64,000 nucleotides of DNA from Schmidtea nova (lineage: Eukaryota). Within the stretch, counting starts at the first letter, position 1. Every line of letters starts with the position of its first letter. The stretch spans positions 434,806,001 through 434,870,000 of the forward strand of contig CM097882.1 of NCBI GenBank assembly GCA_044892505.1, in the 5' to 3' direction. Shown here one piece after another: positions 27,387 through 64,000 of this stretch. Below the pieces are notes generated by a model. That model searched no databases. It had not been told where the DNA came from and worked only from the letters and a program-made list of their open reading frames with translations. A program made the translations under genes and the position numbers.

Positions 27387-30154
27387 CAGGCCTGGCCAAC
27401 CCAAATCGCTCTGCGGGCCAACTTTTTTATCCAAAATTTTATGCGGGCTATATAATATACGAAAACCCCAATTTTTATTGAAATATTTGTTTGAATTATT
27501 TCAGTACATAGATTTATTTGAACCATTCCAAGAAAAACATCTATTTTTATATTTACACTAGATTTTTTTTATTGTTTCAAGAACATTTTTATTGAACCAT
27601 TTATTTTTATTATTTCACTACACTTAAGTATAATATTTATTAATGAGATGTTTGCTTTTCTTTGCGATCGCTCAATGCTTTTAAATCTACATCAATTTGG
27701 GTAGTTGCACATCGTAATTGGCTTTCAAGGTTTTCGTCTGTTAATGAAGCGCGAAATTTACTTTTGGTAAATTTCATTTTTGAAAAAAAGGCTTCACAAA
27801 CATATGTAGATCCGAAGGCGCTTACAATTTTTTGAGCGAATAATCTTAAGTTAGGATACCTTTCTGCTGTTATATACGTGTTGTAGAATTCGATTTTTGA
27901 TGTCGTCTTATGAACCTGCTTCAACTCATTGTTACACTGCAAATTAATTATTTCCATCTGTAAAGCTTCTGGAACAGTGAAAGCGTCAACTTGAAATGGT
28001 GAAGAAAATATCTCAAACGTTTTGTCATATTTTGTAAGTTCTGAGAAACGACGAGTAAATGCAGCTGAAAGTTTTATAATTTCATCAGCGTACTTTGCAA
28101 AATTAATAGCTTGACTGCTATTAAATTCTTTTAATAACGGAAAATGGTGAAGATTGTTATTTCGAAGTTGGGACTCAAATAAAATTAGCTTGGTTTGGAA
28201 TGCTTTGATATGATTACAAGCATCAATAATTAAATTATCTTGCCCCTGTAACTCCTTGTTTAGCTGGTTAATTTTTTCGGTTATATCTACTAAAAAACAC
28301 AGGTCCAACAACCACATATCGTCATTTAAATTTGAAACTGGAGTTCCCTCTTCAGCCATAAAATTTTCTATTTCCACCCGTAATTCAAAAAATCTTTTTA
28401 AACATGTTCCGCGACTCAACCATCTAACTTTGGTAAAATAGACAATATCGCCGTATTCCGAACTTAATTCGTCAAGGTATGCTCTGAACTTGCGATGCTG
28501 AAGCGCATGTGATTGATTATAGCTAACTGTTTTTATTACCACATCCATGACATGGTTCATGGACAATACCTGGGCACATAAATTTTGCTGATGTATCAAA
28601 CAGTGTATTACAAATATTTCACTGGGTTTAACAGATGTAGCTTCAAGTTCATCCATAAACAACTTTACGGTTCCTTTATTTTTACCAATCATAGCAGGCG
28701 CACCATCCGTTGTTAGTCCAGAAAGCTTCTCTAAATGTAAAGAATTACAGGATAAACATTTTTTTATAGCGTGGAAAACATCCTCTCCTCTAGTGGTGTC
28801 TTTCAAATTTAAAAGATTTAACATTTCTTATGTCACTCCGAAAGAATCGTTAACTCCACGAATAAATACAGCAAGTTGTGATGTATCTGAAATATCTGTA
28901 CTTTCGTCGAAAGCTAGAGAATATGCTTTGAATTGTTGAATCCGCTCTCGTAAAGTCACCACTATTTCATCCGAAATATCATTAATGCGACGACAAATAG
29001 TTTGACGCGACAAACTTATGCACGAAATCATTTTATGTTTATCTGGCATAACATCTTCTATAACAGCTGCCAAACATTCTTTTACAAATTCTCCGTCCGA
29101 AAATGGTTTCATTTTCTTAGCGATTAACATTGCGACAGAGTAGCTTGCTTTAACAATATTAGAAGGTAGTTGTAATGAAGAACTAAACATTTTCTGCTGA
29201 GATTTTAATTCGGATTTTAGCTCGGCCAATTTAATTTTTCTCAATTCACTATTAAATTTCACATACACGTCGTGTTTCGTTTCATGATGTCTTTTAACAT
29301 TGTATTCCTTAAAAACAGCTATTGTATCTCGGCAAATCAAACATGTTAATTTTGAGTACTACATTATAAAGAAATAATTTTCTTCCCAATGATCGCTGTA
29401 TTTTCTGTTTTCTTCTGAAACTCTTCTTTTTTTGGAATTCATTCTAAAGGCCATGTATAATTATTCAAAATAAGTGCATTTACTGTTACTTACTTATTTA
29501 TTTAATTTTTCTGGTATAGAAATATAATTAATTAGATTTTTTATATTACTTTTTTTGTGTTATATAATTTGATATTGTTTATCACTTAAAAATACGCCAC
29601 TTCATATCTTAACAAAAACAAAGCCAAACTAAAAAGGTTTTTCAATAATTGTCGCCATCTTTAGTTATATTTTTCTGGCAAAGCCTACTATATAAATATT
29701 TTTGAATTACTCGTTTAAATCTTTTACTTATGAATAAATATATATGCACGGAAAACGGATTTTTCTGCCAACTGAGAAAACTGATTTTTTCCAAAAAAGT
29801 ATACTGTGTGTCCATTTCATTACATAAAACAAAAATGTTTACAACAATTTTATTACACGTAAAAATATGCAATCAAATAAAAACCAATGAAGATTATGAA
29901 TATAAACTTTTCACAAAACAAAAATTATAATGAGACGGACTAAAAAACATAACAAAAACTTTTTAATATTGAATTTTGTAGTCAATTTTTTTCTAAAAAG
30001 TCTGTATTTAATAATTTGGGTAGATTTTGTAATATATTTATTTTTTTATAGATTCTGTAAAAAAATTTTACCGCGAATAATAATCATGCCACGGGCCGCA
30101 AAATATACACAAAGGGCCGCATGCGGCCCGCGGGCCGCGGGTTGGCCACGCCTG
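27387..30154 (-). mobile_element. Full-length hAT transposon, SPIN/Buster/Charlie (GTF2IRD2-like) group
   Basis: TIRs caggcctggccaacc / ggttggccacgcctg; 8-bp TSD gtatagac / gtatagat with central TA; 2768 bp. Confidence 0.95.
27640..29454 (-). pseudogene. SPIN-like hAT transposase with two in-frame stops
   Basis: CLICRDTIAVFKEYNVKRHHETKH, LAFDESTD, TTDGAPAM, HCLIHQ, VRWLSRG, FGSTYVCEAFFS; stops near 29360 and at 28828. Confidence 0.93.
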
Positions 30155-37599: not shown

Positions 37600-39417
37600 T
37601 TAATTTTCTTGATTTCTGTGATGGGAGTTGCAATCATTATTGTGTGGCTTGGATTGGGGTTCTGTGTATTGGGATTCCGCGTAAATGTTGATCTTATAGC
37701 TGTTAGGCCCTGTCCTATAATATTTATTTAGGACAAATGCTTGGATGGGCTTCCCTTGATCATCCAACATTCCTCCCAGGGCCGTCAAAGTAATGTCCTC
37801 ATTACCTTTTTCATTCAGGACCATTTCAATTTCTTTATCCTTCAATTTCATTACTGTTCTCTTGAATCCTTTCTTGATAGCAAGATTTAGGGTATCATCT
37901 TCCTCAATTCGTCTTCCAAAATGGGTACATAATTGTTTTTCCGTTATCTCGTTTTGATCGGCGCCTATAATGAAGCTAGGTTCCTCATCCTCTTCTATTT
38001 CCATTTCAATGTTTGGTTCTTTTCCTAATTCGTCTTCTGCTTTTATTTTATTCTCCATTTCTTTTGTGACATCTTGCTCATCGTCTTCCTCCACTGAGAA
38101 ATATTCTTCGTCCGAATCTAAGTCGCAAATGTCTTCGCTTTCTTTGTATCTTTGTATCAGTTGCCGTTCGTTTTTAATCATTATTTGATTTTCCGGTGGT
38201 CCTTCTTCTTTTGTAATCATTAGTTCGTCATCACTATCTTCATGTATTGTTTCTTCCGTATCTGATTTTTCATCTTTTATCATACTTTCATCTTCACTTT
38301 CCTCCAACTCTTCCATAAATGATTTTTTGTTTTGCATCTGGTATAGATCTCCTTTCATTTCGATATCGTCTGTTATTGGTGTATCACTTTGTAACGATGT
38401 TGAAGCTCCTGAATTCCATTTTATTATAGGCTCCCATTTGTCTTCTACTATTCCATGTATTACTTTCAATATTGTTGTTGTTTTTCTGGCAGAAAATGGC
38501 TCACTTTCTAATAATGCTTCATTCAGTCTCTTATCTTTGTACCATCTCTTATGGTATTTAATCACTTGGTAAGCTAAGTTAGATAGCCTAATTTTAAGTG
38601 GATCTACGTTCTTTACGAATGAACACATAAATTTATCTCTGGCCATTTCTCTCATTCCTGCGATGTTGTCTAGACCAAATGTTAGCATTTTTAATTTATC
38701 TATCATGTCAAATCCATGATTATTTTTCCCCACAACAGCTTTCTGATATCCATTAGCGCCTGATACTCATCTTCATTTCCAACGATACTTTCTTTATTAA
38801 TCATTGTTTTTTCTGTGCAGAAGTTTTTTATTTTCGTTCTTGGGGTTATCTTTTTATTGTATATAATTTCACCGTTGTACTTTCTTATACATACTTCTAC
38901 TGGTCGCTTGTTGTCGTTTTTATCAATTGCAAATTTTGCATCCATGAACACAATTAGTTGGTGCCTTTCTTCTGTAGATAGTTCATTGTGTGTGAAAGAG
39001 ATTTTTTCATTTATCCAGCTTTGATCATACCAAGGTTTTGAAGGGATTGGCGGCATTGATTGGAATGGATTTGATATTAGAGGGATATAGAGTATCTCGA
39101 TTCCTGACACACGGTAAGTTGTTCATTTGGATTATGAGGTGATTAAAATCGTCTGGCATACTTCTGTTGTTTGTAATTGTTTTGATGATGATTGAACAAT
39201 TAATTGTTGTGATTATTGGTACTTTATGTTGGCAAATTGATACCTCGGTTTTTGTCATGTGGAATAGGATTCTATGTGGTAACTTTTTTCCTTCGATTAC
39301 CGCTTTGTCGACATTAAGATGTTTTTCAAATGTGCCGATTAGGTCTTTTAGTTTTGTTCGTCGGGCTTCATTAAATTTGATAATATGTAGTTCTTTTTCT
39401 TCAATTTCCACTCTCAT
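37600..39417 (-). pseudogene. Frameshifted accessory ORF with a REX4/ISG20-like DEDDh exonuclease fold (38460-38960), an acidic tract and an unknown C-terminal domain
   Basis: VFMDAKF..VCIRKYNGEIIYNKKITP..IKNFCTEKTMIN..IRKLLWGKII/GFDMIDKLKML aligns by eye with REX4 ALDCEM..VSIVNQYGKCVYDKYVKP..VTDYRTAVSGI..AEMLKGRILVGHALHNDLKVL. Confidence 0.7.
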
Positions 39418-39922: not shown

Positions 39923-40693
39923 TTATACCAATGTGGACCTCGTATATTCACCTGGTATATATTTACCCAAATGGAAATGCCCTACATTTCGGCTCCGATA
40001 CCGCTGCCTTTTCCATTTGTACTTTTTGTAGATTTGTATGCTAGTTACTAAAGCTAAGACTACTAATGTTATTACTGATGCTGTGATGATATAATAAGGT
40101 CAATGTGGCTTTTTATCCTTTTTTTGAAATGCTTGTAGTTCCTCTAAGTTATGTATAATTGTTGGTTTTCCTTGCTCTATTTTTATAGATTCTTGTTTTA
40201 GTTTTTGTTTCTTAGCATAGTATTGTTTTTGGAATTTTGTTCGTCTAGTGTTTGTTGGTATATGTGGTGTGGTATTTACTATATTATTTGATGTCGTTAT
40301 TTTTATATTTATTTCTTTTATTTTTGTGTTTTCTATTCTATCGGGTGTTGTTATTAGGTTTTTGGATAATTGTTCTGTTCTTATTTTTTTGCATATCCAT
40401 ATTGTTGTATCTGTGTTTCTTTGTATGCAGATTCTGTATGTTGTATTAGGTGTCAGTTTTGTGAAGTTAACATAGTTTCCTATTTTGATTTCGTTGGTTG
40501 TTCTATCATCTTTTTCTTTTATCATCTTTGGATTTTCGTCATCCGTTGTTTGCATGTATATGTCAATTACTCCTCTGTTTATGATAAGTACTCTAACTTC
40601 ATTTGTTGATATTTTTATTAATACTTTGTCAAATTCTATTCTTTCGGTTGAACTAGCAAATGTTATGATTGTTAAGAAGATAGCCGACATCAT
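39923..40693 (-). pseudogene. Type I membrane module (signal-like segment, FN3-like domain, Thr-rich stalk, TM, short tail) in frame with integrase
   Basis: MMSAIFLTIITFASS; FTKLTPNTTYRICIQ..WICKKIRT; after in-frame TGA 40100-40102: YYIITASVITLVVLALVTSIQIY-KK; stop 39923-39925. Confidence 0.75.
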
Positions 40694-40699
40694 TAGTTT

Positions 40700-43215
40700 G
40701 TTATGCGATCTTCGATTATATTTATGGGGTTTCTCTACCGTGACCTCTGTTTCTGCAAGTTTGCATCTGTTAACATGTACTACTATTGGGTCTTCATTTT
40801 TCTGCTTTTGTAAATGTAAATTCTCATTTATTACTTTTACTACTTCATATGGACCTTTTTATGGTCTTACTAACTTTGTTGTTTTTCCTTTTCCTACTTG
40901 TGGTGACATAAGTCTAACCTTATCACCTACTTTAAAGTTATGTGGTTTACTGTTTTTGTCATAGTCGGCTTTGTATTGTTCTTGTCTAAATTTGACTTTT
41001 AAGTTAGCTACTTTATACACTTCTTGCAGTTTTTCCTGCATTAGTGTGACATAATCGGGTGCGTCTAGATATTGTGATACTCGAGGTTCAAAAATTGTAT
41101 CTATCGGTGTTGCTGGTTCTCTTAAAAACATTAAATAATACGGTGAATACCCTGTTGTTTCGTTTGGAGTGATATTATGAATGTATGTGCATTGACTTAT
41201 GTATTCGTCCCAATCATTTTGATTTTTTCCTACAAAAACAGCTAGTCTGCTTAGTAATGTCCCATTAAATCTTTCTACTAGTCCATCCGTTTGAGGGTGA
41301 TACGCTGTTGTGTTGATCTTTTGCATGTTAAAAATATTAGCTACTCGTTTTATTAATTCACTAGTAAAATTTGTTCCTTTATCTGTTAATAATCTTTTGG
41401 GTGTGCCTATCTTGAAAATTATTTTTTCTATAAGCAATTTAGCAACTGTTTCTGCTGTTTCGTCTTTTGTTGGAAATGCTTCTGCCCATCTAGTAAAATA
41501 ATCACTAAATACTAGTATATGTTTATTCCCATTAATTGTAGTAGGTAATTTACATAGAAAATCCATTGCACATAGTTCCATTGGTGATGTTGTTGCTGGA
41601 ATGGGGTGTAACGGCGCTTTTGTTTTTGTACCTGTATTTTTTCTTGTTGCACATATTGTACACGCGTTACACCATCTCTTAACATCTTTCTTTAATTCTT
41701 CCCAGTAATATTTTGTAATAATCTACTTGCTGTCTTTCTAGATGATAAGTGACCTCCTAATGCTCCATCGTGATATTGTAGTAGGAGTATTTGTCTTAAT
41801 TTCTGAGGTACTACTATTAATTGCTTACCATTGAAATCTTCTATTACTACTAATTTCTTTGATATTTTATACTTTGAATTGTTTTCTTTTCTGATTTCAT
41901 TCCTTATTATACTGATCTCCGGGTCTTTCATCTGTTCCTCATATATATCGATTTGCTTTTCTGCTACTAGTGCAAATATTTCAAGTGCTCCTAATTCTGG
42001 TATTCTTGATAATGCATCTGCGTTTTTATTTATTCTACCTGGTTTATATATAATTTTTAGGTGCATGTCTTGTATTTTCATTGCCCATTTAAGTAATCTA
42101 CTTGATGTATCTTTATGTTTCCATAAGCCTTCTAATGGTTTATGGTCTGTTCTTATTATCACTTCAGTCCCATAGATGTATGGTTTGAATTGTTTTAGGG
42201 CGAATACTATTGCTTAACATTCTTTTTCTATTGTTGAATACCTCAGCTGTGCTCCTTTTAATGTTTTACTGGCATATGCTATTACGTAATTTTTCCCTTT
42301 CTCTTCTTCTTGGCCTAAGACTGCTCCTACGACTTTCCCGCTGGCATCCGTCATTACTATAAACTGTTTTTCGAAATCTGGGTATCTTAACACTGGTGCT
42401 GTTATCAATCTTTCTTTTAGTTTGTCGAATGCTTCTTGATGTTCTTTTGTCCACTTCTTTTGTATCTTGTTAACTTTATTGTTAATTTCTTGTACTATTA
42501 ACACGTCTTTGCATTCTCCTTTTGTTTTAATTCCCTTTGTTAGTTCTATTATAGGTGTTGCTATCTTTGCATAATCTTGTATGAATTTATGATAGTATCC
42601 TGTTAAACCTAAAACCCTTGTACTTGTTGTACTGTTTTAGGTATTGGGAATTTCTTTACGACTTCTATTTTTTCTGGATTTGGTTTTATCCCTTCTACTG
42701 TAACTATATGCCCTAAAAATAGTGCCGAAGACTCTGCCCATTTACATTTGGTTGGTTTAATTTTTATCCTTGCTTTTCTTAGTCTCTCAAGTACGTTTGT
42801 TATATCTTTTAGATGTTCCTCGAATGTCTTTGATGATATTAATATGTCATCCATGTATACTGCACAGTGTTGTACATTTATTAATATTGTGTTCATTAGA
42901 CGTTGAAATGTGGCTGGCGCATTAGTTAATCCGAAGGGTAATCGTGTGTACTCATATAAACCATCCTCAATAACAAATGCTGTTTTCTCCGCATCCCCTT
43001 CTTCCATTTGAATTTGCATATACCCCTTATTCGCATCAATGACTGAAAAATACTTAGCATCCCTAAGTTTATCGTATTGCTCTTGTGCTTTTGGGAATGG
43101 ATATGAATCTTTTACTGTTACACCATTTAATTTACGATAGTCAATGCACATTCTTATTTCTCCGTCTTTCTTTTTGACGGGTACAATGGGTGATGCCCAC
43201 TGTGACAATGCCTTT
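40700..43215 (-). pseudogene. pol: Element 2 pol (RT 42609-43205, RNase H ~41990-42500, integrase ~40760-41780)
   Basis: RMCIDYRKLN, PFGLTNAPATFQR, YMDD, TDASG, DHKPL, YHDGALGGH, AMDFL, LTDKG, VERFNG, KGPY. Confidence 0.93.
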
Positions 43216-43244
43216 ACGAAAGCAAGTCTCTGTAGCATCTTACT

Positions 43245-46012
43245 GCCGTACTATCAACACCGCAAACTCTCTTCCGGTACGTTGTAAAGTACGCCCTCTT
43301 TCGAACGAAAAACTAGATTTTGTTCGCTCCGAATTCGCTACTTTGTTGAACGAAGGCATTATAAAAAGATCTAAATCTCCATGGTCTTCACCACTTCATC
43401 TCGTACCAAAGAAAGACGGAACTTTCAGACCTTGTAGAGATTATCGTCGTTTAAATATGATTACGGTTCACGACTCATATTCTATGCCTTTAGTAAACGA
43501 CATTTTGTACAGACTTACCGAGGCCAAAATATTTTCAACTACCGACTTAGTTAAGGCCTATCACCAAATCCCAGTTAAAGAATCTGACGTGGAAAAAACC
43601 GCAGTTTTAACACCTATCGGACTTTTTGAGTACGTTTTCATGCCGCTTGGTCTTAGAAATTCCGCTCAAACCTTTCAAAGACACATCGACCATTTTTTAA
43701 TGGATTTACCATTCGCAATTCCTTATATTGACGATATCCTCATTGGTTCTAAGGATGCGGAAACACACAAAAAACATTTAGATGCAGTTCTTTGCGCACT
43801 TTCTTCCAATAACCTACAGATTAATTTAGATAAGTGTTTATTTTTTAAAGAAGAAGTCCGTTTTTTAGGTCACATTATCTCGGGCCAAGGCGTCAGTTCA
43901 CCATCTGACAGACTAGATACTATATCTAAGTTTCCTCTTTCACAAACTGTTACTCAACTTCGGAGTTTTCTGGGAACAGTAAACTATTGCCACCGTTTTA
44001 TTCCTAAAATTTCAGAAATTCTTTCACCTCTTTCTGGTTACTGTTCTAGACCAAAGAAATCTATAATTCCTTGGATCGATACTTCGTTGCTCGCTTTTGA
44101 GCATGCTAAAACAGCCCTTTCAAACATACAGACTTTGCATTATCCACGAGGAGATTTGCCATTACGTTTAACCACAGACGCGTCAAACATAGCAATCGGT
44201 GCCGTTTTGCACCAGATAAACGGTTACATCCCAGAGCCACTAGAATTTTACTCAAAGAAACTTACCTCACCACAACAAAAATATTCAGCTTTCGACCGCG
44301 AACTTCTCGCTATTTTCCAGTCGGTTAAACATTTTAAGCATTTACTCGAGGGCCGTCTTTTTAGCATCCATACAGACCATAAGTCACTTGTTTACTTGTT
44401 CTCAATGAAAGACCCTTCTCCGAGACAACAACGCCAGATTAGCTATAGTAGCGAATTTTCTTGCCAAATATATCACATCGCCGGCAGTGATAACATTATA
44501 GCTGATTGCCTCTCACAAAATGTAAACGCAATTATCCATTGTCCTTTATTTTCTATCGACGAACTCCAAAATAATCCTCCAGATGCCATTGATATTTCGA
44601 AATTTGGCGACAAACATATAATCAAAGACAAAATTCACTACGACTCATCTCTTCCTGGCACTCTTCGCCCAATCTTGAACGACTCCATGAGAAAACCGGC
44701 TTTTCTATCTATCCACAACGAGCACCACCCAGGTTCCTTAGCCACTTTTAATCTATTACACACGTGTGTAGTTTGGCCAAACATGAGACATGATGTTAAA
44801 CTCTGGGTTGCACAATGCATAGGATGCCAACGTTTTAAAATAATTAAGCACACAAAACCTCCAATAATTCATTATCCCACTGGCAACCGTTTCGAAAACT
44901 TACACATTGACATCGTCGGCCCAGTCCCAAGTGACTGCGGTTTTTCTTACTTAACCATGATCGACCGCAAGACTCGTTGGTTCGAAGTCATTCCTTTACG
45001 CACCATTTCTTCTAACACTATCGCAACTTCGCTAATTCAAAATTGGATTTCACGATATGGAGTTCCCAAGTCGATCATCAGTGATCGCGGAACACAGTTT
45101 GAATCTAACTTATTTCAAGCTTTGACCGCTAAACTTGGGATACAACATCTTCGTACGACCACATATCATCCACAAACAAACGGGTTAGTCGAACTTTTCC
45201 ATCGTACTTTAAAAGCTTCTCTTGGCATTCTTTCTGAACAACAAGGTTGGACAAAGGTTTTACCTTTCGTATTATTAGGTTGGCGAAATACACCTTCTAG
45301 GACTACAGGATCATCACCTGCTCAATTACTTTTCGGTACAAACACATCGTTACCCGGTCAACTTGTCGACTTTGATAACTCTCCTACTTTGGAAGATCTC
45401 GCGATTGCCAGAGACCATTTTTTATCAATCGACACTAATCCTGAATTCTCTTCCGCGACCACCTATAAACCTTACATTCCAAAAACATTCGAAAAGGCAT
45501 CACACGTCTATATTAGAAATATAACTGATGCAAGTTTAAAGCCAAGATATTACGGACCTTACAAGCTCGTCGAGATTAAAGAAAACAACGCGAAAGTGAT
45601 CGTTAACGACGCTACACAAACATTTAACCTCTGCCGTCTTAAACCAGCTTTAGTTTTGCTCGATGATGAACCTCCATCTGACAATTTCTCGACCCAAACC
45701 GATATAATCCCGAACTCTCACATAAACGATAATGACCCTATCAATTCCACTGAGGACGATCTTTCCAACAACTCACTTTCATACCCGATTGTTCAAATAT
45801 CAGACGCAGAAAACAAAATTACGGAAAAATCTGAATACATACCGTTTATCCCAGAACCAAATGACGTACTTCGTTTACCACCCATTTTGAGGAAAGCAAA
45901 TCAAACACAAAATAAACCAAAGTCCGTCACTTACAACAAATGGGTTCGTGTCCGTTCTATTAATCAAAAACCGGATTCACCAACCAGACTAATAAAAATC
46001 TATTCAAATTAA
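43245..46012 (+). CDS. pol: CsRn1-like Ty3/Gypsy pol (RT-RNaseH-INT), open frame but 5'-truncated (no gag or protease)
   Basis: SPWSSP, PLGLRNSAQTFQR, YIDD, TDAS, DRELLA, DHK, HNEHHPG..CIGC, HIDIVG, ISDRG, VELFH, YYGPY. Confidence 0.93.
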
Positions 46013-46536: not shown

Positions 46537-46888
46537 ATGATTCTTTTATGCTTCTTTATCAGTGTTCTGCTACAGACAAACAACTAATGAATGTCCATGT
46601 TTTATATCGACATGGCGATAGAGCACCTGTTATTATATATCCAACTGATAAGAATAGGGAAGACAAGTGGCCCAATGGGATTGGAGGATTAACAAATCGA
46701 GGAATTATGCAGCATTTTAATTTGGGCATGTGGCTACGACGTCGTTACAATGACTTCCTTGGGCAATATTTAAACTATTCATTAATAGAGCATTAATGTC
46801 TGCCGAATCAAATCTAGCAGGTTTATTCAACAACCTATCTAAAGAAGTGATCAACGGTCTAAAGTGGCATCCTTTCCCGATTCAAACT
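46537..46888 (+). pseudogene. Intronless fragment of a histidine acid phosphatase (ACP2/ACPP-like)
   Basis: Signal-like start, VLYRHGDRAP, WPNGIGGLTNRG, LGMWLRRRY, RALMSAESNLAGLF, WHPFPI; frameshift and internal deletion. Confidence 0.85.
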
Positions 46889-46961: not shown

Positions 46962-48137
46962 TTATTTATCATGTTTTGCCGTAATCAGGTATTTGGCTAC
47001 AAACGGGCATAAACATGCTAGTAATTTATATGAATTTCCGAATACTTGTTTCAGCTGTCGTAGTGATTCTAAGGAAGAACAAATCATTTTTAGTAAAAAC
47101 AACCGTATAGTAAATTCCCAAAATTGTAGAGAACATGTTTCCAAGGACTGCAAAATATCCCCATATACTATATAATACTTTATATACTACTTTTTTGAAA
47201 TATTCTTTTGATAACACCACGTCAGAGTTGTAATTTCCTCCATAACTTCCTTCGATAACTTTGTTCACCATTATTGACAGTATTCCTTCTTTTTCGTTTG
47301 GGAATAACATGTGTTTTCTTGCACTTTCTATAGCTTCTCTCGTATATATGCCATTGCTATCCATATCGTTGATTTCTTTAAACTCCAATCTTTTTTCAAG
47401 CTCTATGAGTTTTAATTTGAGGGGTTTCATCGCCTCTTTCCTATCTGACATAGATATCCACATTTCGTCATTTATCTTATATAATGGATTAGTACATTTT
47501 TCTATTTTTCTTGGTACATAAGTTTTTTCTGTTAGTATTCTCGTAATCGGTTGAAGGTATACTCTTTCTCCTTTGTATACTACAGGTAACTCGTTTGTGC
47601 ACTGATTGTTTGTTGCTAATGATACACTAACAGGTTTACATTGGAATGTCTGTATTACTTCCCCTACTATTCTAGCAAATGTTCCCTCTTCTGAAAAGAT
47701 TATTGGGGCCATTAAATCTTGGTTTGTTACTGCGACTGCCATTTTTGTTCTTAATATTTCTCGGTTGAGTTTGCAATCGCTCATAATTGTTGATTGGTAC
47801 ACTTTATCTAGTTGCACTAACTGATTATGATAGAAGAAATCGATTTTATTGTTAAAATACGAAGCGAGTTTGACGTTGAATTTGTTTACTTTCTGTTTTG
47901 CATCTTTAACTTCTTCCTTACTTACGTATATCCCTTCATAATTAGTTCGTATTATTTCCTTACCGCATTTTACACTTTTTCCTTTACTAACAAACCTCAT
48001 TTCTTCATTTTCGGATTCTGACATATATATTGTTGGTGTATCTTTTTCTTGTACAATTGTTGTTTTTCTTTTCTGATCTCTTACTCTTTTAGAATCTACT
48101 TCTGTGAACTGCTTCCCTTTAATTTCTCTAAATTCTC
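46962..48137 (-). pseudogene. env: Chuvirus-like class III fusion glycoprotein (env-like), C-terminal two-thirds with TM
   Basis: CGKEIIRTNYEGIY..YFNNKIDFFY..DCKLNREIL..GTFARIVGEVIQTFQCKPV..CTNELPV..YLQPITRIL..WGYFAVLGNMFSTILGIYY; frameshift near 47080. Confidence 0.8.
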
Positions 48138-48265
48138 GTTTCAAAAATTTAGGAAACGAGCGAATTTACAAAATGTAAAAATCTCTGGAGAGGCAGGCAG
48201 TGCTGATAATAAAGCTGCTGAGGATTTTGTAGCTAAATTCGATGATTTCCTTAAAGAAGAAAATC
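48138..48265 (+). mobile_element. Internal pogo/Tigger transposase fragment
   Basis: FQKFRKRANLQNVKISGEAGSADNKAAEDF matches the Tigger/pogo motif RFKKR..L.NVK..GEAASAD. Confidence 0.75.
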
Positions 48266-49400
48266 TATTTATTACCCAACTCATCCATCCTTCTTCGGAT
48301 TCTTCTCTTTCTACTCTTGTTAAACGGTTTATTTCTACTGCTTGTCTTTGATTGATGTTACTTATAGTTTGATTTTCTCTGGTGAGCTCAGTTATAACTC
48401 TTTTTTGCTCTTCTGTTCTATGCAATTGTTCAAAACAGTTGTTATAACTCTCTGATAATAGAATTTGTCTTTCCGCTAGTTGGTTTTGTAATGAGTTGAC
48501 TGTTCGTACTAGTAAATCACATTGCGCTTTCCATCTCATGGCCATAGTTATTTCAGTTGTTTCGTCTTGTTCGTTCATTTCTAAATTATATACATCAATT
48601 ACTTTCTCGTTTTCTCTTTTTATGTATTTTATAATATCGATACCCATACTATTACGGTAATGCTTTATTATTTATACTATTATTTACAGTCATAATCCGC
48701 CCCTATACTCTCATTACTTTCCTTTCGTCGTATCTCTCTTCATCTTCTATTTGCTTCCAAAATTCTTTACCTTTCGTTCTTCTTTGAAATTCTTTCTGTA
48801 TTTCTTCTGGTATTTCTATTCTTTGATTCGTAATTTTAATATCTGGCCATTGTATGGCTGTCGCTTTATTTCTCCTCCTGTACATCCAACATACTATCAT
48901 GCTCGTTGTCAGTATTCCACCTGTTATTAATATTCCCATACTAATTACTCCTATTACTATTTTACCAGTGTTTGTTTCTTTGGTTTTATTCTGATTCACC
49001 CTTATCTCATATTTGTCTTGGATTTGAGCCTCCGGCTTCCTCTCCTTCTGCGCTTGGCTCTTGACTTTGTTCATTACTTCTTGTGTAGACCAATGGTGGT
49101 TTAGTATTTGTTTGGCGTAGTTTTCCGTTGTTCGGTTTCTCATGTTTCCTGTTTCGATATGTTGATTCAGTTTCTCCGAGATCTGGTATGATCCGCACTC
49201 TGTCTCCTCTGAATTTTTTCCTGTAAAGGTACATATCGCGTATGTCTCATTTACCTCCTTTTGCCTTAATTCGACTTTTCCCTTGTTCCCTGTTTCTTTA
49301 CAATGGGTTAGGTTATCTTCTTCTACTTCTGGGTTATGTTTTATCCAACATACTCCTTTCACAGTCTGTTTGAGTCCTATTAATGTTAAATTATTATTTC
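48264..49400 (-). mobile_element. Fragment of a sister copy of the giant element (last FN3-like repeat, TM, tail, spacer and coiled-coil ORF)
   Basis: Collinear with ~56177-57310; proteins 48703..49362 and 48264..48578 closely match 56622..57280 and 56137..56493. Confidence 0.93.
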
Positions 49401-56136: not shown

Positions 56137-56493
56137 CTATGGCTCATTCGTTGAATCTGGTTCCGCTTCGTTGTTTAGTCTATTTATTACCCAACTCATC
56201 CATCCTTCTTCGGATCCTTCTCTTTCTCCTCGTGTTAAATGATTTATTTCTATTGCTTGTCTTTGATTGGTGTTGCTTATTGTTTGATTTTCTCTGGTGA
56301 GTTCAGTTATCGCTCTTTGTTGTTCTTCTATTCTGTGTAATTGTTCGAAACAATTGTTATAACTTTCTGATAATAACATTTGTCTTTCCGCTAATTGGTT
56401 CTGTAATGAGTTGACTGTTCGTACTAATAAATCACATTGTGCCTTCCATCTCATAGCCATAGTTATTTCAGTTGTTTCGTCCTGTTCGGTCAT
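56137..56493 (-). CDS. Small coiled-coil protein, 118 aa
   Basis: ATG ORF conserved in the sister copy at 48264-48578. Confidence 0.7.
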   Translation of the reverse strand: MTEQDETTEITMAMRWKAQCDLLVRTVNSLQNQLAERQMLLSESYNNCFEQLHRIEEQQRAITELTRENQTISNTNQRQAIEINHLTRGEREGSEEGWMSWVINRLNNEAEPDSTNEP

Positions 56494-56621
56494 TTTCTAA
56501 ATTATATACATCATTTACTTTGTTTTTCTAGCTTTTTACAAATTTTTTTATAATATCGATACCCATACTATTACGGTAATGCTTTGTTATTTACACTATT
56601 ATTTACAGTCATAATCCGCCC

Positions 56622-58070
56622 CTATACCATCATTATCGTCTTTTCTTCGTATCGTTCTTCATCTTCTATTTGTTTCCAGAATTCTTTACCTTTCGTTCTT
56701 CTTTGAAATTCTTTCTGTATCTCCTCTGGTATTTCTATTCCTAGTTTCATGATTTTGATATCTGGCCATTGTATGGCTGTCGCTTTGTTTCTCTTTCTGT
56801 ATCTCCAATATACTATTATGCTTGTCGTCAGTATTCCATATGCTATTAATATTCCTATACTCATTAATCCTATTATTGTTTTTCCACTGTTTGTTTCTCT
56901 TTTATTCTGGTTCGCTTTTATCTCATTTTGGGTTTGAGCCTCTGGCTTCTTCTCTTTCTGTATTTGACTCTTAACTTTGTTCATTACTTCTTGTGTAGAC
57001 CAATGGCGGTTTAGTAGTTGTTTGACGTTATTTTCTTTTGTTCGGTTTTCCATGTTTCCTGGTTCGATCTGTTGTTGTAGTTTCTCTGAGATCTGATATA
57101 ATCCGCATTCTGGTTTTTCTGAACCTTTTCTGGTGAAGGTACATATCGCGTATGTCCTATTTACTTCCATTTTCTTTAATTCGACTTTTTCCTTATTCCC
57201 TATTTCTTTACAGTGGGTTAGGTTGTCTTCTTTCCCTTCTGGGTTATGCTTTGTCCAACATATTCCTTTAACTGTTTGATCGAGTCCTGTTATTGTCAGA
57301 GTTCTTTCTGTCTTTGTTAATTCTTCTTCATCGAATTTCAGTATCTCTCCTTTTTGGAATGTCTTGCAATGCTCTATTCCCTCTTGGATTCCTCTCTCCC
57401 AGATACATATACTTCCTTCTTCATTCATTTGTATTTCTTGTATTTCGATTTCCTTGTTTGTTCGTGATTCGTCGCTTGTCTGAACTTGGTATTCCTTCCT
57501 TGGTTCGTTGTATGTTCCCCAGCATAGTTTGTTGCTGCTTGTTTTTCTTATTGTTATGGCCATTTGTTCTATTATTATTCCTTTATCGATACGTTTGGAC
57601 ATTGCTATTATCAACGCTATGCATACGCACTCTTGTTGGGGTGATGTTCTTTCTCTCGTGTTATTGGTGCTTTTCTCCCCTTCTCCTGGTTTATCCGTTG
57701 TGTTTCTTATCTGAGTTGCTGGTTGATCTATGGTGTTTTTGATTTCTTTCTTTGTTGGTTTTACTCTATACCATTCAAGTCTAGGTGTTTCGTATTTTTG
57801 GCATACGACTGTCTTAGGTAGCCCCGACTTCTTTTCCTTTCCTATTATGCATATCCGATGCATGATTCCTCTATCCATCCCTTCTATTCGTACTATATCC
57901 TGGTCGGATTTTCTGATTATGCATTTTAGGGGGTTATCTTTCCCAATTGGTTCATCCTCTCTATTCCAGCATATTTTCTCGACCTCCTGGACATTTACTA
58001 TTTTTATCCCTGCTTGTAGGTTTGTTGCTTCTTCCCTATTGATTAATGTCAATATTATTGTTAGACCCAA
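56622..58070 (-). CDS. Type I membrane protein with three Cys-type FN3-like repeats; paralog of the polyprotein C-terminus; lacks an ATG
   Basis: WLGLTIILTLI signal-like segment; ICW..C..I.I..(Y)..IC..C..Y repeats; IIGLMSIGILIAYGILTTSIIVYW-RYRKRNK. Confidence 0.8.
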   Translation of the reverse strand: MGLTIILTLINREEATNLQAGIKIVNVQEVEKICWNREDEPIGKDNPLKCIIRKSDQDIVRIEGMDRGIMHRICIIGKEKKSGLPKTVVCQKYETPRLEWYRVKPTKKEIKNTIDQPATQIRNTTDKPGEGEKSTNNTRERTSPQQECVCIALIIAMSKRIDKGIIIEQMAITIRKTSSNKLCWGTYNEPRKEYQVQTSDESRTNKEIEIQEIQMNEEGSICIWERGIQEGIEHCKTFQKGEILKFDEEELTKTERTLTITGLDQTVKGICWTKHNPEGKEDNLTHCKEIGNKEKVELKKMEVNRTYAICTFTRKGSEKPECGLYQISEKLQQQIEPGNMENRTKENNVKQLLNRHWSTQEVMNKVKSQIQKEKKPEAQTQNEIKANQNKRETNSGKTIIGLMSIGILIAYGILTTSIIVYWRYRKRNKATAIQWPDIKIMKLGIEIPEEIQKEFQRRTKGKEFWKQIEDEERYEEKTIMMV

Positions 58071-58107: not shown

Positions 58108-61100
58108 TCATATTTTTTTCTCTTCGCCTTTAATCTCTTTTAGTTCCTTGTCTTTGTTGTTCATCCCTAGTTTTGCGATTTTTGCTTCTTTCTTATTCCT
58201 GGTCGATTTTGGTTCTTCTCGTGCTTCTAGTCTTTCGACTCCATGGCTTGTATTATCTATATTTAGCCATTGGGTTGTTGATTTTCTTGGGCTTATCTTG
58301 CGTATCCATATAGCTGATAACGCGATTATTACTGGTATGGTCGCTGTTAATATTCCTAAGCCAATTAGTTCTTTAATTTCTTTATTCTCGTCTGTTTGTA
58401 TAGATTCGCTTTGGTTGAACATTATTCCGTATTGTCCCTTTAGTTTTCTCATTAATTGTTCCCGTTCCTCCTGCTTTCTTTTGACTTCCTTGATAACTTC
58501 TTCGGGTGTCCGTTTTGCTTGAGGGTCGGTTATTGTTTTTTCTGCGTTCATTTGTTCATTCGTTTGGCTTAGTTCCCTGAATTCGAGTTTCCTTGTTATT
58601 CCTTTTGATGTTGCGTTCGCTGGTGTATAGTAGGTTTCGCATCTTTCTTGTTGGTTTCCTAGTGCGTCCGTTTTTTCTATTGTACATACTTCGTATTCGC
58701 TATTAAATTGTAGTTTTTCGATCTTGATTTCTTTATTTGTTTTTCTGCACTTTCTTGATTGTCTTCTTATATGTTTCTGGACTATTATCCAACATATTTC
58801 CAATGTTTTATTCTCTATTTTCCATAATGTCAGAGTTGCTGATGTCTTTCTCTCGGGTTTTGTCGTAACTTTTTGGTTTGTTGGTTGTTTGTCGCTTTTA
58901 AGGGTAGTGGTGTACTTCGGTTTTCCTTTGTTTCGTTGTTTCCTTTTATTTTTCCGTGTTAACGTTTTGGTTCTTGTTCCGGATGAAGTGGTGTATATTC
59001 CGCATTCTAGGTCGTTTATCGTTATCTGATCATTTTTCTTTACCAGACATATTTCGTAAGTTTGTTTACTTTCTAAACCTTTTATTTGTATCGTCGTTGC
59101 TCCTGTGCTTGTTCGACATTGTGGTGTCTTTCTTTCATTCGTCTCTTTTTCGTACTTCCTCCAGCATACTCCTTTCACATTTGGTTCTATTTCTTTTATT
59201 TCTAATGTTATGTTTAGTTTCTGCTTGATTTGTTTATTTCTCTTCCTCGTTCTCCTTCTGAACTTTATTACTTCTCCAGGTTGGAATGTTTTACATTTTG
59301 TGGTACCTTTCTTGTTTGTCTCTTTTTCTAGTAGGCATAGTTTGTACGTCTTATCTGCTTTTACTTCGGATACTTTAATTACTTTATTCGTTGTTGGTTT
59401 TCGACTTTTCCTTATTTCATTTACGCCGATTTCCTCGTTATTCCTTGCCCAACATTTTATGTTAGTATTCTGTGTATCTTCTACTTCTGTTATTGTCATA
59501 GTTTCAATTTCTATTCCTTCCTCTAATCGTTTTATCATTATTAGTATGAGTGCTAAGCATAATACTTCCATTTGGTAAGACACTCTTTCGGTTTCGTTTG
59601 TGGCAACTCTTGCTTCGGGCCTCTTTATTGTAATTCGTATAGTTGGTGTTGTTTGCTTATCTATTACCTGGGGTTTTTTGTTTTCTGTTCCCTGTGTCTC
59701 TGTTCTTCCACATTTTCCGAGGATGTAATCTCCTTTGGGTGACTGTTGTATTGTCATGGCTGCTTTAGGTGTTTGGTATTTTGCACATGCGATTGTGTTG
59801 TGTGATCTTGGATGCTTTTGTTTTCTAACGGTGCATATTTTGTACCAGGTATCTAGATCTAAGTCATTGATCTCTATGATCTCTTGCTCGTGTTTTGAGA
59901 TTCTGCAATCCATCGGGCTATTTTGTTCCGTGGTTTTGTCCTTTTTCGACCAACATACTCGTTCGATTCCTTTTGCGTTTTTTATTTGTATTATTGCCCT
60001 TTCTTCACATGTCATTCCCTGACTTGGATTAATTAACGTTATAATCATTGTTAGTAATAGTAATTCTGGTTTGAAGAATGGTTTTATGGTTGATTTATAA
60101 CCTGTTCTTTGGGTGTCATTTTTATCTCCTTGGTCGTTTGTTCCTTGTTCTCTCCCTTCATCTCTTTGTTTTTCATCTTCACCTTTCTTTCCTTCCTTGT
60201 CTCGTTTCTTGTCTTTTCTCTCGTTTTCCTCTTTATCGGGTGGTTCGTGATCGCTTGAATTTTCTGAGTTGTTACCGTCGTCACTATCTGTGTTGTCATC
60301 TCCCCCTGGCTCGTCGAAAATGTCGTCCTCGACATTGATTTCTTCTATTAGTTTCGCATACGCTAATGTCGTTAGATTACTTGCCTCAAATTCTTGTGTT
60401 TCTACCTGCTCCGGTATTACTTTGTTAGTGGATTTATGTTCCAAGATTTCCTTTTTGGCCTTGATCCAATTGTTGATGTATGTCTTCATCAATTCTTTCC
60501 ATTTGCCTGTGTATTTTTCCTCTTTCGGGCTGGTTGTGATTTTTAGATCTTTTCTTTCCATAAACATCTTCAATATCTCTGGCCATTTATACGTTATTAA
60601 GGCACTTCTTATACACCAGTTTTGGTTATGTTCTGTAAACTTATTAATCCTGAATGCTGGTTCGTTAGTATTAGGATTTATCCACGTAAGTATTGATTCT
60701 GTTAGTTCGACGTTGTTCATCATTGCTAGTACACTGGGTTTCTTGACCGTATCAGTTAGGTGATCTATTTCTTCCTGATTTGGGACGGTTTTAATGAAAT
60801 TGACCATTTCCCAATTGTGTGTTAATAATGCTACATCCAATATCGAATTATCTTTATCTGTCTTTCCTGTAAGTCCTGCACCTGCTTTGTATAGTTCTTC
60901 TAATACCTTTGTTTTCGTTCTGGCCCTTGCTGCAAATACCATAAGTGTATCTCCTTTCTCGTCTATCATATTCATATTGCTTCCGCAATTTAGCATTACT
61001 CTTGCAATTTCCATTACTTTTCTATCTTTGCCATTTCGTAAAGCTCTATGTATGGGCATTATTCCGTCTTTTGGTAGTAAAAACGCTACTGGCATCTCCT

Positions 61101-64000
61101 TTTTTATAGTCGTTATATCGTTACCATTGTATGTTCCTTTTGCGTATGCGTGTACTTTTTCAACTAATGCACCGAGTATTTCCAGTGCATGTTTACTATT
61201 CTCGAATTCCGGTAACAATTCTTTTGCTTTTTCTTGTATCGCATCTAGTCTAGCTTGGTATGGTGCTTCTGCTTTGAAGAGTGGTGTGAGTTTCTTGTTA
61301 CTTTCTCTTTCTTTTTTCTCTAAAACCTGTTTGCATTTTTCGGGATGGTTTAAGATTTTTACTAATTCCTCATATTCGCTTACTATCGTCTGGTATTTCT
61401 CGTTAAAATTGTTTATGTCTTTGTATGTTATTAGTTTATCAAGTGGTTTCGCACACCATTTCCTAATCTTATTGAATAAGGCTTCCTTCTCTTTATCGAA
61501 TTTGTATTCTTCTTCATTCTTTGTGATGTTTATGTTTCCTCTGTCTAATAAGGTTAGTAATGTCTTCTGATCACAAGTAAATTTCAAAAGGTATCTTAAC
61601 AGTGCGTTTTGTCCTTCGCTGTATACTTCGTTTATGTCTAAGACCCATGTATCATCTTCTGGTCGTTTCCATTTGATTAACTTACGGATCGTGTTGCATT
61701 TACCAATTTTGATTGCCTCTTTGATAATGTCTCCTTTAACTAGTTCGTCTATCTCCCAAGTGGAGTTAGCTATTATGTATTTCAGCATTGGTTGGTGAGA
61801 ACTCCATATTACGTGATTTAGCACTGTTTTGTCTTCTCTATCTCGTTCTGTCCAACTGAAATGAGCTTTTATCAATAGGTCTATCATTTCTTTATCTGCT
61901 TGGTGGATTGCGGCTGTCATTAATGGAGTTTCTTGTTCCCGATTCCCTACGTCCAAGTTTTGGTTTGTTTCTTTTGCGATTTTTAGGAATTCTTTTGCTC
62001 TTTCAATGGTTTTACACTCTATCGCATTATGTAAGGCTGGTTGTCCTCCTACATCTTTCAATAAGAGTATTTCAGGGATTTTTTCCAATAGTTCAGAAAT
62101 AATTGGTTCGGTTGGTAATCCTTGTGCGTAACGGCTAATTATATGTCTAATATCCCTTGATATGTCTGCTTCGTCTCTAACATGCCATCTTCCCATTATC
62201 TCTCTCGCCTTCAATATGATTTCTTTATTTCTGATTTCTTTTTGCCTTATTTCTGCTTTGTCGTCTTCAGTTGCATTAGCTCTGAGCATATTTATCCTGG
62301 CTGTTTGTGATCTAGTTATTATTCGATTTTCTGGTGTTGTAGTTATCGTTTTAGGCACCTTCTTACATCTGCAGGTGTTTACATATATGGGTCGTATTAA
62401 CGGTCGATTTATTAGCTTAACTTTGACATTGTTGTCCTTTTTGTATATAATTTCATAAGGTCCTCTTCCAGGTCTTTGGAGTTTCTTAACAGTTCCTGGT
62501 ATTATTTCGGGAGTTTCTATTATCACCCAATCTCCTGGTTTTAGGTCGTTCGCTTTAACATTTTTCTTCTGGTCGTGTAAATCCTTATAACTTTCCTGAT
62601 AAAATTTAATGTTGAGTTCTGCCGTTTTCCATATCTCCTGCATTCTTTCTTTGAATTTGGTTACGTAGTCGTCATCTTCCATATATTGCGCTAATGGTGG
62701 CTGATACTCTAAATCTATGGGCATGTTGCATTCTCTTCCATACATAAGTTGAAATGGGCTTAGTTTTGTTGCTGCATGTATCGACATTCGGTATGCCATT
62801 AAACATAATTTTATATATGCGTCCCAATCAGTCTGATGTCTGCTGACGTAATTTGATAACATTCTGATCAATGTACCATTGAATCGCTCCGTTTGTCCAT
62901 TCGTTTGCGGGTGATATGGTGAAGTTCTCAATTTTGCTATTCTGAAATAGTTTGTTACCTCGTTCAATAACTCACTCATAAAATTAGTTCCTTGGTCTGT
63001 GAGTATTTGTTTTGGAGTTCCGTATCTGCAACATATTTCTTCCACTAAAATTTTTGCTACAGTTTTTGCTTTTTGGTCTTGCATGGCAAATGCTTCCGGG
63101 AATTTTGTCAGATAATCTGTTATCACCAATATATAAATATTTCCGTTTAGACTTTCCGGTAATGGTCCTATTACGTCCATTGCTATAGTTGTCATTGGCT
63201 CTGCTGGTATCGGCATTGGTTGTAGCGGGTTTTTCCATTTCCTCCCACTATCCTTTCTGGTTGCACAAGTTAGACAATTTTTAATCCATTCCTTTATATC
63301 TTCTTCCATTGTTCGCCAATAATATTTTTGTCTCATACGATTTATTGTCTTCTTCTCGGACATATGACCTCCTAATTTCCCATCATGGTACTGGATCATT
63401 ATCTCTTTCCTTCTGTTTTCCGGTAAACACATCAATCTCTTTTCTCCGTCTTGTATTAACAACCATCCTTTATTTATTATGTAGCGATGTTGATATTTCC
63501 CTATATGTTCCTTTAATTCCTTATTATCCTTGAATACCTCCATATTTCGAGACGTTAGGAACTCTATGATCTGTCCCAATTCTTTGTCTTCCTGTTGATC
63601 TTTCTTTAACTCACTAAAATCTAAATCCTCCGCTATTAATACACAAATTCGTTGTACATCAGGATCGGTTAATTCCGGAAATGTCAGTCTTGACATACAA
63701 TCTGCATTCGCATTCGCTCGTCCTGATTTAAATTTTATGTCTGGTGAGTACTCCTGTAACTGCATTGCCCATCGCATTAATCTACTGGATGTTTCCTTGT
63801 GCTGTCCTAACCATACAAGTGGTTGGTGATCTGTTGTTATGCAGATGATGTGTCCCCATAATAGGTATTTAAAATGTTTAATTGCTAATATAATCGCTAA
63901 TGCTTCTCGCTCTGTCACTGAATAATTTTTCTCATGCTTTTTGAATGTCCGGCTATAATATCCGATTACCCGTTCCTTTCCTTCGTCGTCGTATTGTCCT
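58108..64000 (-). CDS. pol: Pol polyprotein: RNase H - integrase (HHCC, DDE, GPY) - ankyrin clusters - acidic linker - signal - 4 FN3-like repeats - TM - tail; open to the window edge
   Basis: EREALA, TDHQPL, YHDGKLGGH..CLTC, AMDVIGP, LTDQG, TERFNG, GRGPY; GQPALHNA, ETPLMTAA, IMPIHRAL, GDTLMVFAA; LLLLTMIITLINPSQG; LIGLGILTATIPVIIALSAIWI-RK. Confidence 0.93.
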   Translation of the reverse strand, partial: GQYDDEGKERVIGYYSRTFKKHEKNYSVTEREALAIILAIKHFKYLLWGHIICITTDHQPLVWLGQHKETSSRLMRWAMQLQEYSPDIKFKSGRANANADCMSRLTFPELTDPDVQRICVLIAEDLDFSELKKDQQEDKELGQIIEFLTSRNMEVFKDNKELKEHIGKYQHRYIINKGWLLIQDGEKRLMCLPENRRKEIMIQYHDGKLGGHMSEKKTINRMRQKYYWRTMEEDIKEWIKNCLTCATRKDSGRKWKNPLQPMPIPAEPMTTIAMDVIGPLPESLNGNIYILVITDYLTKFPEAFAMQDQKAKTVAKILVEEICCRYGTPKQILTDQGTNFMSELLNEVTNYFRIAKLRTSPYHPQTNGQTERFNGTLIRMLSNYVSRHQTDWDAYIKLCLMAYRMSIHAATKLSPFQLMYGRECNMPIDLEYQPPLAQYMEDDDYVTKFKERMQEIWKTAELNIKFYQESYKDLHDQKKNVKANDLKPGDWVIIETPEIIPGTVKKLQRPGRGPYEIIYKKDNNVKVKLINRPLIRPIYVNTCRCKKVPKTITTTPENRIITRSQTARINMLRANATEDDKAEIRQKEIRNKEIILKAREIMGRWHVRDEADISRDIRHIISRYAQGLPTEPIISELLEKIPEILLLKDVGGQPALHNAIECKTIERAKEFLKIAKETNQNLDVGNREQETPLMTAAIHQADKEMIDLLIKAHFSWTERDREDKTVLNHVIWSSHQPMLKYIIANSTWEIDELVKGDIIKEAIKIGKCNTIRKLIKWKRPEDDTWVLDINEVYSEGQNALLRYLLKFTCDQKTLLTLLDRGNINITKNEEEYKFDKEKEALFNKIRKWCAKPLDKLITYKDINNFNEKYQTIVSEYEELVKILNHPEKCKQVLEKKERESNKKLTPLFKAEAPYQARLDAIQEKAKELLPEFENSKHALEILGALVEKVHAYAKGTYNGNDITTIKKEMPVAFLLPKDGIMPIHRALRNGKDRKVMEIARVMLNCGSNMNMIDEKGDTLMVFAARARTKTKVLEELYKAGAGLTGKTDKDNSILDVALLTHNWEMVNFIKTVPNQEEIDHLTDTVKKPSVLAMMNNVELTESILTWINPNTNEPAFRINKFTEHNQNWCIRSALITYKWPEILKMFMERKDLKITTSPKEEKYTGKWKELMKTYINNWIKAKKEILEHKSTNKVIPEQVETQEFEASNLTTLAYAKLIEEINVEDDIFDEPGGDDNTDSDDGNNSENSSDHEPPDKEENERKDKKRDKEGKKGEDEKQRDEGREQGTNDQGDKNDTQRTGYKSTIKPFFKPELLLLTMIITLINPSQGMTCEERAIIQIKNAKGIERVCWSKKDKTTEQNSPMDCRISKHEQEIIEINDLDLDTWYKICTVRKQKHPRSHNTIACAKYQTPKAAMTIQQSPKGDYILGKCGRTETQGTENKKPQVIDKQTTPTIRITIKRPEARVATNETERVSYQMEVLCLALILIMIKRLEEGIEIETMTITEVEDTQNTNIKCWARNNEEIGVNEIRKSRKPTTNKVIKVSEVKADKTYKLCLLEKETNKKGTTKCKTFQPGEVIKFRRRTRKRNKQIKQKLNITLEIKEIEPNVKGVCWRKYEKETNERKTPQCRTSTGATTIQIKGLESKQTYEICLVKKNDQITINDLECGIYTTSSGTRTKTLTRKNKRKQRNKGKPKYTTTLKSDKQPTNQKVTTKPERKTSATLTLWKIENKTLEICWIIVQKHIRRQSRKCRKTNKEIKIEKLQFNSEYEVCTIEKTDALGNQQERCETYYTPANATSKGITRKLEFRELSQTNEQMNAEKTITDPQAKRTPEEVIKEVKRKQEEREQLMRKLKGQYGIMFNQSESIQTDENKEIKELIGLGILTATIPVIIALSAIWIRKISPRKSTTQWLNIDNTSHGVERLEAREEPKSTRNKKEAKIAKLGMNNKDKELKEIKGEEKKI

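Follow-up and report, generated by a model that had tools for sequence, protein, structure and literature searches.

The DNA analysed here is a 64,000-nt stretch of Schmidtea nova (the window). On its minus strand, at 39923-40861, the end of an integrase (INT) is followed in the same frame by a putative membrane protein; we call the element to which this span belongs element 2, and element 1 a second, uninterrupted element of the same strand that serves as comparator. Element 2 is probably the decayed 3′ end of a giant open reading frame (ORF) containing pol, from a Ty3/Gypsy-type lineage of endogenous retroviruses whose frame ends in a membrane module. Because its relatives carry the same layout in a giant uninterrupted ORF, the association of pol with a membrane protein appears clearly to be a trait of the lineage and not a chance reading. 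A preliminary description of this DNA had proposed such a fusion as a clade-level trait, and sequence comparison confirms it for the reading frame, as distinct from the mature protein. At that level, the in-frame architecture, its conservation in the relatives and its restriction to the clade all appear well established.

Translation of the span 39923-40861 opens with the last part of a GPY/F-type tail, which a linker of some 20 codons joins to two Met codons and a hydrophobic signal-like stretch (Kyte-Doolittle hydropathy 2.22 over 11 residues); there follow a beta-rich domain of about 90 residues, a Thr-rich stretch in which 10 of 43 residues are Thr, a predicted helix rich in Lys and Gln, a transmembrane (TM) helix (hydropathy 2.36 over 19 residues) and a basic tail of about 30 residues. 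Three N-glycosylation sequons are present. The succession announced by the preliminary description—INT tail, signal-like start, FN3-type domain, Thr-rich stalk, TM and tail in one frame—is present. The module shares the frame of the integrase and holds one internal stop within 39923-40693, followed by its natural terminal stop; over the whole span there are two internal stops, and not the single one that had been read through. With the terminal stop counted, this frame has 3 stops in 313 codons, against 6-42 in the other five frames and 24.2 +/- 4.6 in composition shuffles, none of 2000 shuffles having three or fewer. Stops being far fewer than in the shuffles, the frame is clearly coding. About 55 codons, i.e. 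the end of the GPY/F-type tail and the linker, separate the INT core piece from the signal-like start, and Pfam found no ankyrin (Ank) downstream of the integrase, as had been noticed. Nor did any Pfam family of class I, II or III fusogens match the module; by homology as by size (about 250 residues) it does not look like a retroviral or errantiviral Env fusogen.

The relatives, designated P and L, are metagenome gene calls and contigs respectively. A word search with the integrase region of element 1 returned 535 proteins, the closest being P0008-P0012, whose INT is 44-48% identical to that of element 1 and 44-52% to that of element 2. From reverse transcriptase (RT) to INT, element 2 is 40-54% identical to P0008-P0012 and collinear with the full-length relatives. 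Four large ORFs among the relatives are described in the table; in the contig of P0008, the glycoprotein and the protease (PR) sit in the preceding ORF. In P0008, P0009, P0010, P0012 and P0019, the frame passes INT without a stop into a hydrophobic segment, an ectodomain, a TM and a tail. The ectodomains (100-370 residues) bear Cys and sequons, the TM is strong, and the first hydrophobic segment of P0009 is below the threshold used. Element 1 does likewise within its uninterrupted ORF, so that the common logic previously suggested for the two elements of the window is indeed found. In none of these six uninterrupted relatives, element 1 counted, does a stop occur between INT and the module, over links of about 60 to about 870 codons of AT-rich DNA in which shuffles give about one stop per 13 codons. 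A real stop after the GPY motif followed by a separate ORF was thus not seen in any of the six, which belong to other families than that of element 2.

A neighbour-joining tree built on the INT core places elements 1 and 2 in one cluster with P0004 and P0008-P0012, with P0019, P0015 and P0018 just outside. The INT core of element 2, which is 44-52% identical to those of P0004 and P0008-P0012, falls in a clade whose ORF also encodes a Monjiviricetes-type fusion glycoprotein, placed between gag and protease; it is 46% identical to that of element 1, in keeping with the earlier view of element 2 as a second Gypsy family, and the INT part of the phylogeny that had been advised places both elements together. 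The C-terminal extensions of Gypsy pols were surveyed in the 120 INT relatives listed, hydrophobic segments being scored in the extension that follows INT. At 43% INT identity or above, 4 of 5 relatives have such segments, the fifth having no residues beyond INT. Below 43%, about 5 of 115 have them: P0019 (41%) and 4 of the 114 others, many of which have long extensions. As hydrophobic segments are common only in the closest relatives, the trait tracks the clade and not Gypsy pols generally.

Position and topology of the module appear conserved, its sequence does not. The relatives' modules form at least four groups without detectable sequence similarity: P0009, P0010 and P0012 share a Cys-rich type, and P0019, P0008 and element 1 each have a different one. 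The module of element 2 matches none of the relatives' modules significantly; for the modules of element 1 and of P0008, BLASTP and hhalign gave a likeness at motif level at most. In the tails of P0009, P0010 and P0012, some 15-25 residues beyond the TM, there is a PPxY motif resembling a late budding domain; the tails of elements 1 and 2, P0008 and P0019 lack it.

What stands between INT and the module varies as well. Retropepsin-like domains occur after INT in the same ORF in P0004 (residues ~353-446), P0008 (~1050-1140 and 1772-1860) and P0012 (~2468-2560), which is unusual, a second protease after the integrase being concerned; in P0012 and P0008 such a domain directly precedes the signal-like segment. 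On its short contig, P0004 has this second protease-like domain directly behind the integrase, and on another short contig, L002, ankyrins follow the integrase tail in another frame.

The position of the module is also marked from its downstream side. In all four relatives' contigs that reach downstream (L003, L004, L005 and L008), an exonuclease-like ORF lies directly behind the giant ORF, and all these ORFs belong to one family. The downstream piece of element 2 matches those of L003, L004 (two), L005 and L008 with E of 3e-06 to 4e-13 (tblastn, blastp), the pieces that flank 38706-39122 giving collinear but non-significant matches. The ORF of L003 identified ISG20L2 (4.7e-10) and ISG20 (1.1e-09) in a search of PDB sequences; the match of the element 2 piece itself to ISG20L2 is weak (E 0.046), and Pfam gave no match for the downstream ORFs of element 2 or the accessory ORFs of the relatives. 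The order from module end to exonuclease-like ORF is conserved in the four contigs and in element 2, which therefore extends to at least about 38.7 kb; this order shows that in element 2, too, the ORF that contains pol ends with the module. The G+C content of contigs L001-L005 and L008 (0.29-0.34) is close to that of the window (0.32). On L004, an 85-nt direct repeat (2242-2326 and 25693-25777, 80% identity, 23.5 kb apart) brackets the coding region, and may represent the long terminal repeat (LTR) ends of a very large element. On L005, the contig of P0010, a DNA_pol_B_2 gene (Polinton/Maverick-type polymerase) is found at 16872-18689, about 2 kb past the exonuclease ORF.

The ectodomain of element 2 was presented earlier as FN3-like. 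This is plausible from phmmer and from Foldseek; on the other hand it stays below the Pfam cut-off, so that we consider the FN3-like character as suggestive and sub-threshold. The beta-rich domain contains the Tyr-x-x-Cys motif of FN3 type, and phmmer matched it over 9 stretches (E 2.1e-08) to P0001, a host-type membrane protein with 11 Pfam fn3 stretches. Nearly all of the best Foldseek matches to the low-confidence single-sequence model of the module are to FN3 domains (E 4e-03 to 2e-02), and the module profile gives weak matches to the FN3 of NCAM and contactin. For the module of element 1, the model has a predicted local distance difference test score (pLDDT) of 84.7, with FN3 and monobody matches at TM-scores of 0.5-0.6 and E of 0.05-0.2.

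The copy of element 2 in the window is dead and non-functional, as it has frameshifts and stops and lacks gag, protease and LTRs. Its pol shows the Ty3/Gypsy (Metaviridae) order RT, RNase H, INT (Zn-binding, core, GPY/F-type tail), with Pfam matches to RVT_1 (2.8e-37), RT_RNaseH_2 (9.4e-30), Integrase_H2C2 (9e-06) and rve (4.5e-10), and a weak one to Integrase_p58_C (0.0037) for the integrase C terminus. Two frameshifts and two in-frame stops interrupt the stretch from RT to INT, and one of these stops also belongs to the span 39923-40861; the open pieces were queried separately, never across stops or frameshifts. The homology to the relatives begins at RT, the copy being a 5′-truncated fragment; no gag or protease belonging to it was found in the window, and the repeat search around it gave no LTR pair or direct repeats bracketing it.

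Table. Features of the window and of the relatives. Coordinates refer to the window, or to the contig where one is named.
Feature	Location	Strand	Length	Content and basis
Element 2, C-terminal membrane module	39923..40693	-		translation, hydropathy, stop statistics; position and topology as in the relatives' modules
Element 2, FN3-like domain	40361..40624	-	~88 residues	two Cys; phmmer, Pfam, Foldseek of the model
Element 2, pol remnant	40694..43238	-		RT, RNase H, INT Zn-binding and core, GPY/F-type C-terminal tail, linker
Element 2, probable remnant of accessory ORF (ISG20-like DEDDh exonuclease)	37600..39417	-		pieces in more than one frame; significant homology only at 38706-39122
Different Gypsy-type RT-RNase H-INT ORF, intact	43190..46012	+	940 residues	Pfam; head-to-head with the truncated 5′ end of element 2
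Class III fusion glycoprotein ORF (rhabdovirus/bornavirus-G type)	47026..48144	-	372 residues	Pfam Monjiviricetes_fusion 1.8e-56
Element 1 ORF, uninterrupted	58108..63918	-	1936 residues	translation; Pfam rve, Integrase_H2C2, Ank_2
Free-standing ORF, paralogue of the element 1 membrane module	56622..58070	-	482 residues	31% identity over 340 residues, E 3e-38; hydrophobic segments
N runs	14603-14885; 16841-16994
Exonuclease-like ORFs of relatives	L003 10924-12426; L004 17041-18420 and 18755-20116; L005 13230-14729; L008 9030-10649		~450-540 residues
P0012			2871 aa	gag, Monjiviricetes-type class III fusion glycoprotein, PR, RT, RNase H, INT; Pfam, single ORF
P0010			2694 aa	glycoprotein-PR-RT-RNase H-INT; Pfam, single ORF
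P0019			2663 aa	glycoprotein-PR-RT-RNase H-INT; Pfam, single ORF
P0008			2387 aa	RT to INT, then protease-like, ankyrin and protease-like blocks; Pfam, single ORF

Several observations nevertheless weigh against element 2 being the end of such an ORF. In element 2 itself the linker has only about 20 codons, so that its openness taken alone is not significant, and no intact copy of its own family was found by word, all-protein or metagenome DNA searches. The word-index protein search with a 197-residue piece gave no match; the all-protein phmmer search with tail plus module gave six matches, i.e. the host-type FN3 array as sole relative of the module and otherwise integrase-tail fragments; and the scan of metagenome DNA gave nothing with the module and only 25%-identical integrases with the INT core. 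For the FN3-like domain, Pfam fn3 (PF00041) reached E 0.011 and 16.4 bits, under the 25-bit gathering cut-off (E 0.095 on a longer piece), and the model of the module, with 7 beta strands, has a pLDDT of 41. The modules of elements 2 and 1 are alike at motif level only (BLASTP E 0.4-1.2; hhalign over 21 columns, E 0.006, probability 6%). Lastly, the relatives are metagenome gene calls. In one short fragment, P0002, a stop comes 34 residues past the integrase tail. The absence of sequence relatives, the internal stop and the low-confidence fold model would suit the absence of any gene, the open frame and the hydrophobic stretches having arisen by chance in AT-rich, decayed DNA. This is hardly credible when none of the 2000 shuffles is as open, three independent methods give FN3-type matches and the architecture is that of the relatives.

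The two Met codons that element 2 and P0010 have exactly where the signal-like part starts also weigh on this side, for they are compatible with separate initiation: the module might be a separate accessory or env-like gene (an ORF3), made from a spliced subgenomic mRNA or through internal initiation, its in-frame link with pol being a tolerated overlap. Element 1 does have a paralogue of its module as a free-standing ORF; a separate env ORF is the normal arrangement of Env-bearing Gypsy elements (PMC13524379), and rotifer LTR elements have small separate ORF3s containing a TM (PMC5408684). We hold this explanation to be unlikely, though not negligible, as the six uninterrupted relatives are all stop-free across their links; moreover the signal-like segment lacks an adjacent Met in most relatives, and a simple separate start is thereby disfavoured, even if splicing could still supply a start codon. 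The frame could otherwise be shared by coincidence—the chance of this is 1 in 3—if a fragment of a host gene for an FN3-type receptor had landed beside a dead pol fragment. The sole significant sequence match of the domain is indeed to the host-type multi-FN3 membrane protein P0001, and the surroundings are a mosaic of transposon fragments with a host exon. Yet the module stands exactly at the place it has in the relatives, between the integrase tail and the conserved exonuclease-like ORF, with its own signal-like start, TM and tail in one compact intron-less stretch, which makes such a juxtaposition very improbable. An ancient capture of the module from a host gene is possible, and compatible with element 2 being the end of a pol-membrane frame.

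Assuming that element 2 descends from such a frame, the C-terminal module appears to be a second membrane protein and not the env fusogen, because a class III G-type domain is already present in the lineage, encoded between gag and protease. The frame of the lineage would encode Gag, this class III G-type fusogen, PR, RT, RNase H, INT and variable blocks (second protease-like domain, ankyrins), and would always end in a small type-I membrane protein made of a signal-like segment, an ectodomain, a TM and a cytoplasmic tail. In element 2 the module would come directly behind the integrase, with one FN3-like domain on a Thr-rich stalk, and be followed by the exonuclease-like accessory ORF. We infer that translation of this frame yields a polyprotein which is threaded through the membrane of the endoplasmic reticulum (ER). 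The signal/TM pair flanking the G domain would place its ectodomain in the ER lumen, pol being returned to the cytosol; the hydrophobic segment after INT would act as an internal signal restarting translocation, this time of the C-terminal ectodomain, and beyond the last TM the tail would remain cytosolic. The module would then be freed by host signal peptidase, by the protease of the element or by both. Small residues past the hydrophobic cores of several members are consistent with cleavage by signal peptidase, and the second protease-like domain placed before the signal-like segment in P0012 and P0008 may take part in the release. The quick turnover of the ectodomain and the PPxY of three tails favour a role at the surface, and suggest a partner of the fusogen in attachment, receptor interference or budding. 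A bolder reading, which we propose tentatively and find rather doubtful as a whole, is that the whole coding capacity of a metazoan Ty3/Gypsy lineage forms one membrane-threaded polyprotein, whose C-terminal glycoprotein is an exchangeable partner of the fusogen existing in at least four groups, one of them FN3-like.

The rest of the window provides a metazoan-type host context rich in transposons. The 5′ end of element 2 adjoins the unrelated plus-strand pol ORF of 940 residues, which is 33-40% identical to its pol and an outgroup in the INT tree; a second, broken copy of this other family, 50-60% identical, lies at 1-2650 (+). Upstream of element 2 on the minus strand, the ORF of the class III glycoprotein shares 37-40% identity with the G domains that P0010 and P0012 contain. 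It is not contiguous with element 2, the plus-strand pol and a host-type exon lying between; the latter, an exon-like ORF at 46548-46796 (+) between that pol and the G-type ORF, has a histidine acid phosphatase signature (His_Phos_2, E 1e-08). Further away we found an RGS-domain exon at 8316-8774 (+), a mariner/Mos1-type transposase ORF at 11386-12423 (+) and a hAT-type transposase with a Spin-doc zinc finger at 27640-29340 (-).

The ORF of element 1 (G+C ~36%) runs from the end of RNase H through INT, ankyrin repeats and an acidic low-complexity stretch to a signal-like segment, four Cys-bearing FN3-like modules (module alignment), a TM at residues 1848-1875 and a tail. Since its homology to the relatives runs up to position 64000, where the window ends, element 1 probably continues upstream beyond it. 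Its membrane module, used as a region query among long proteins, found none at E 0.001 (8000 candidates). The 482-residue paralogue of this module lies just downstream of the element 1 ORF, and a third, partial copy at 48703-49362 (-) is inside a 1-kb direct repeat. The repeats concerned, at 48264-49317 and 56179-57227, are 84-91% identical and 7.9 kb apart; being coding, they do not form an ordinary LTR pair. At 54668-56044 (-), in the series of ORFs that lies downstream of element 1, a 458-residue ORF with TRAF-type zinc finger and MATH domains could be a captured host gene or a neighbour.

Parts of this architecture have counterparts in other systems. Sacco et al. (2022) reportedly described nematode endogenous retroviruses with a continuous gag-env-pro-pol ORF; these are alike in having a pol of Ty3/Gypsy type, a glycoprotein captured from negative-strand RNA viruses in frame between gag and protease, and extra ORFs downstream of pol. 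To our knowledge that description includes no module of signal, ectodomain and TM fused behind the integrase. In chromoviruses the integrase bears a C-terminal chromodomain, a nuclear targeting domain of the mature protein. The likeness is the accretion of a domain behind the GPY/F module at the C terminus of integrase; by contrast the part added here is a membrane protein, which must sit across a membrane from the integrase. The polyproteins of flaviviruses and pestiviruses are threaded through the ER membrane by alternating signal and stop-transfer segments, and cut by signal peptidase and the viral protease. They are a mechanistic analogue without homology, the threading proposed here being deduced from the order of hydrophobic segments, and we know of no retroelement using this internal-signal polyprotein logic.

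Chary and Hayashi (2026), who cite Sacco et al. (2022) for the nematode elements, distinguish metazoan Ty3/gypsy elements of GAG-ENV-POL and GAG-POL-ENV order, with class III (gB-type) or F-type fusogens, and report GAG-ENV-POL order with a class III env in Nematoda, Bryozoa and Platyhelminthes (PMC13524379). Env in their survey means a fusogen ORF; the module described here has about 250 residues, one FN3-like domain and no fusogen features. Rodriguez et al. (2017) described LTR retrotransposons of bdelloid rotifers with ORF3s coding for small TM proteins or DEDDy exonucleases (PMC5408684). Compared by description, both cases have small Cys-bearing membrane ORFs and 3′-5′ exonuclease ORFs downstream of pol; the rotifer ORF3s are however separate ORFs, with an RNase D-like DEDDy exonuclease (PMC5408684), whereas the present module shares the frame of pol and its neighbouring exonuclease-like ORF matches ISG20-type DEDDh proteins. 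The passages searched in PMC13524379 and PMC5408684 do not mention any membrane module that continues the frame of integrase, nor, in the former, a second membrane protein joined to pol in this way.

In invertebrates, the Gypsy elements that carry an env are the equivalent of retroviruses, and the ways in which they gain surface proteins and express them are being actively studied. For the annotation of genomes, the long extensions found after integrase in this clade should not be written off as read-through artefacts or chimeric gene models. If our interpretation is true, they provide a defined set of natural sequences for questions of expression, processing and surface-protein turnover; and the association of a fusogen with a second, rapidly replaced membrane protein in the frame of pol would represent a new coding strategy of retroelements, akin to the polyproteins of RNA viruses.

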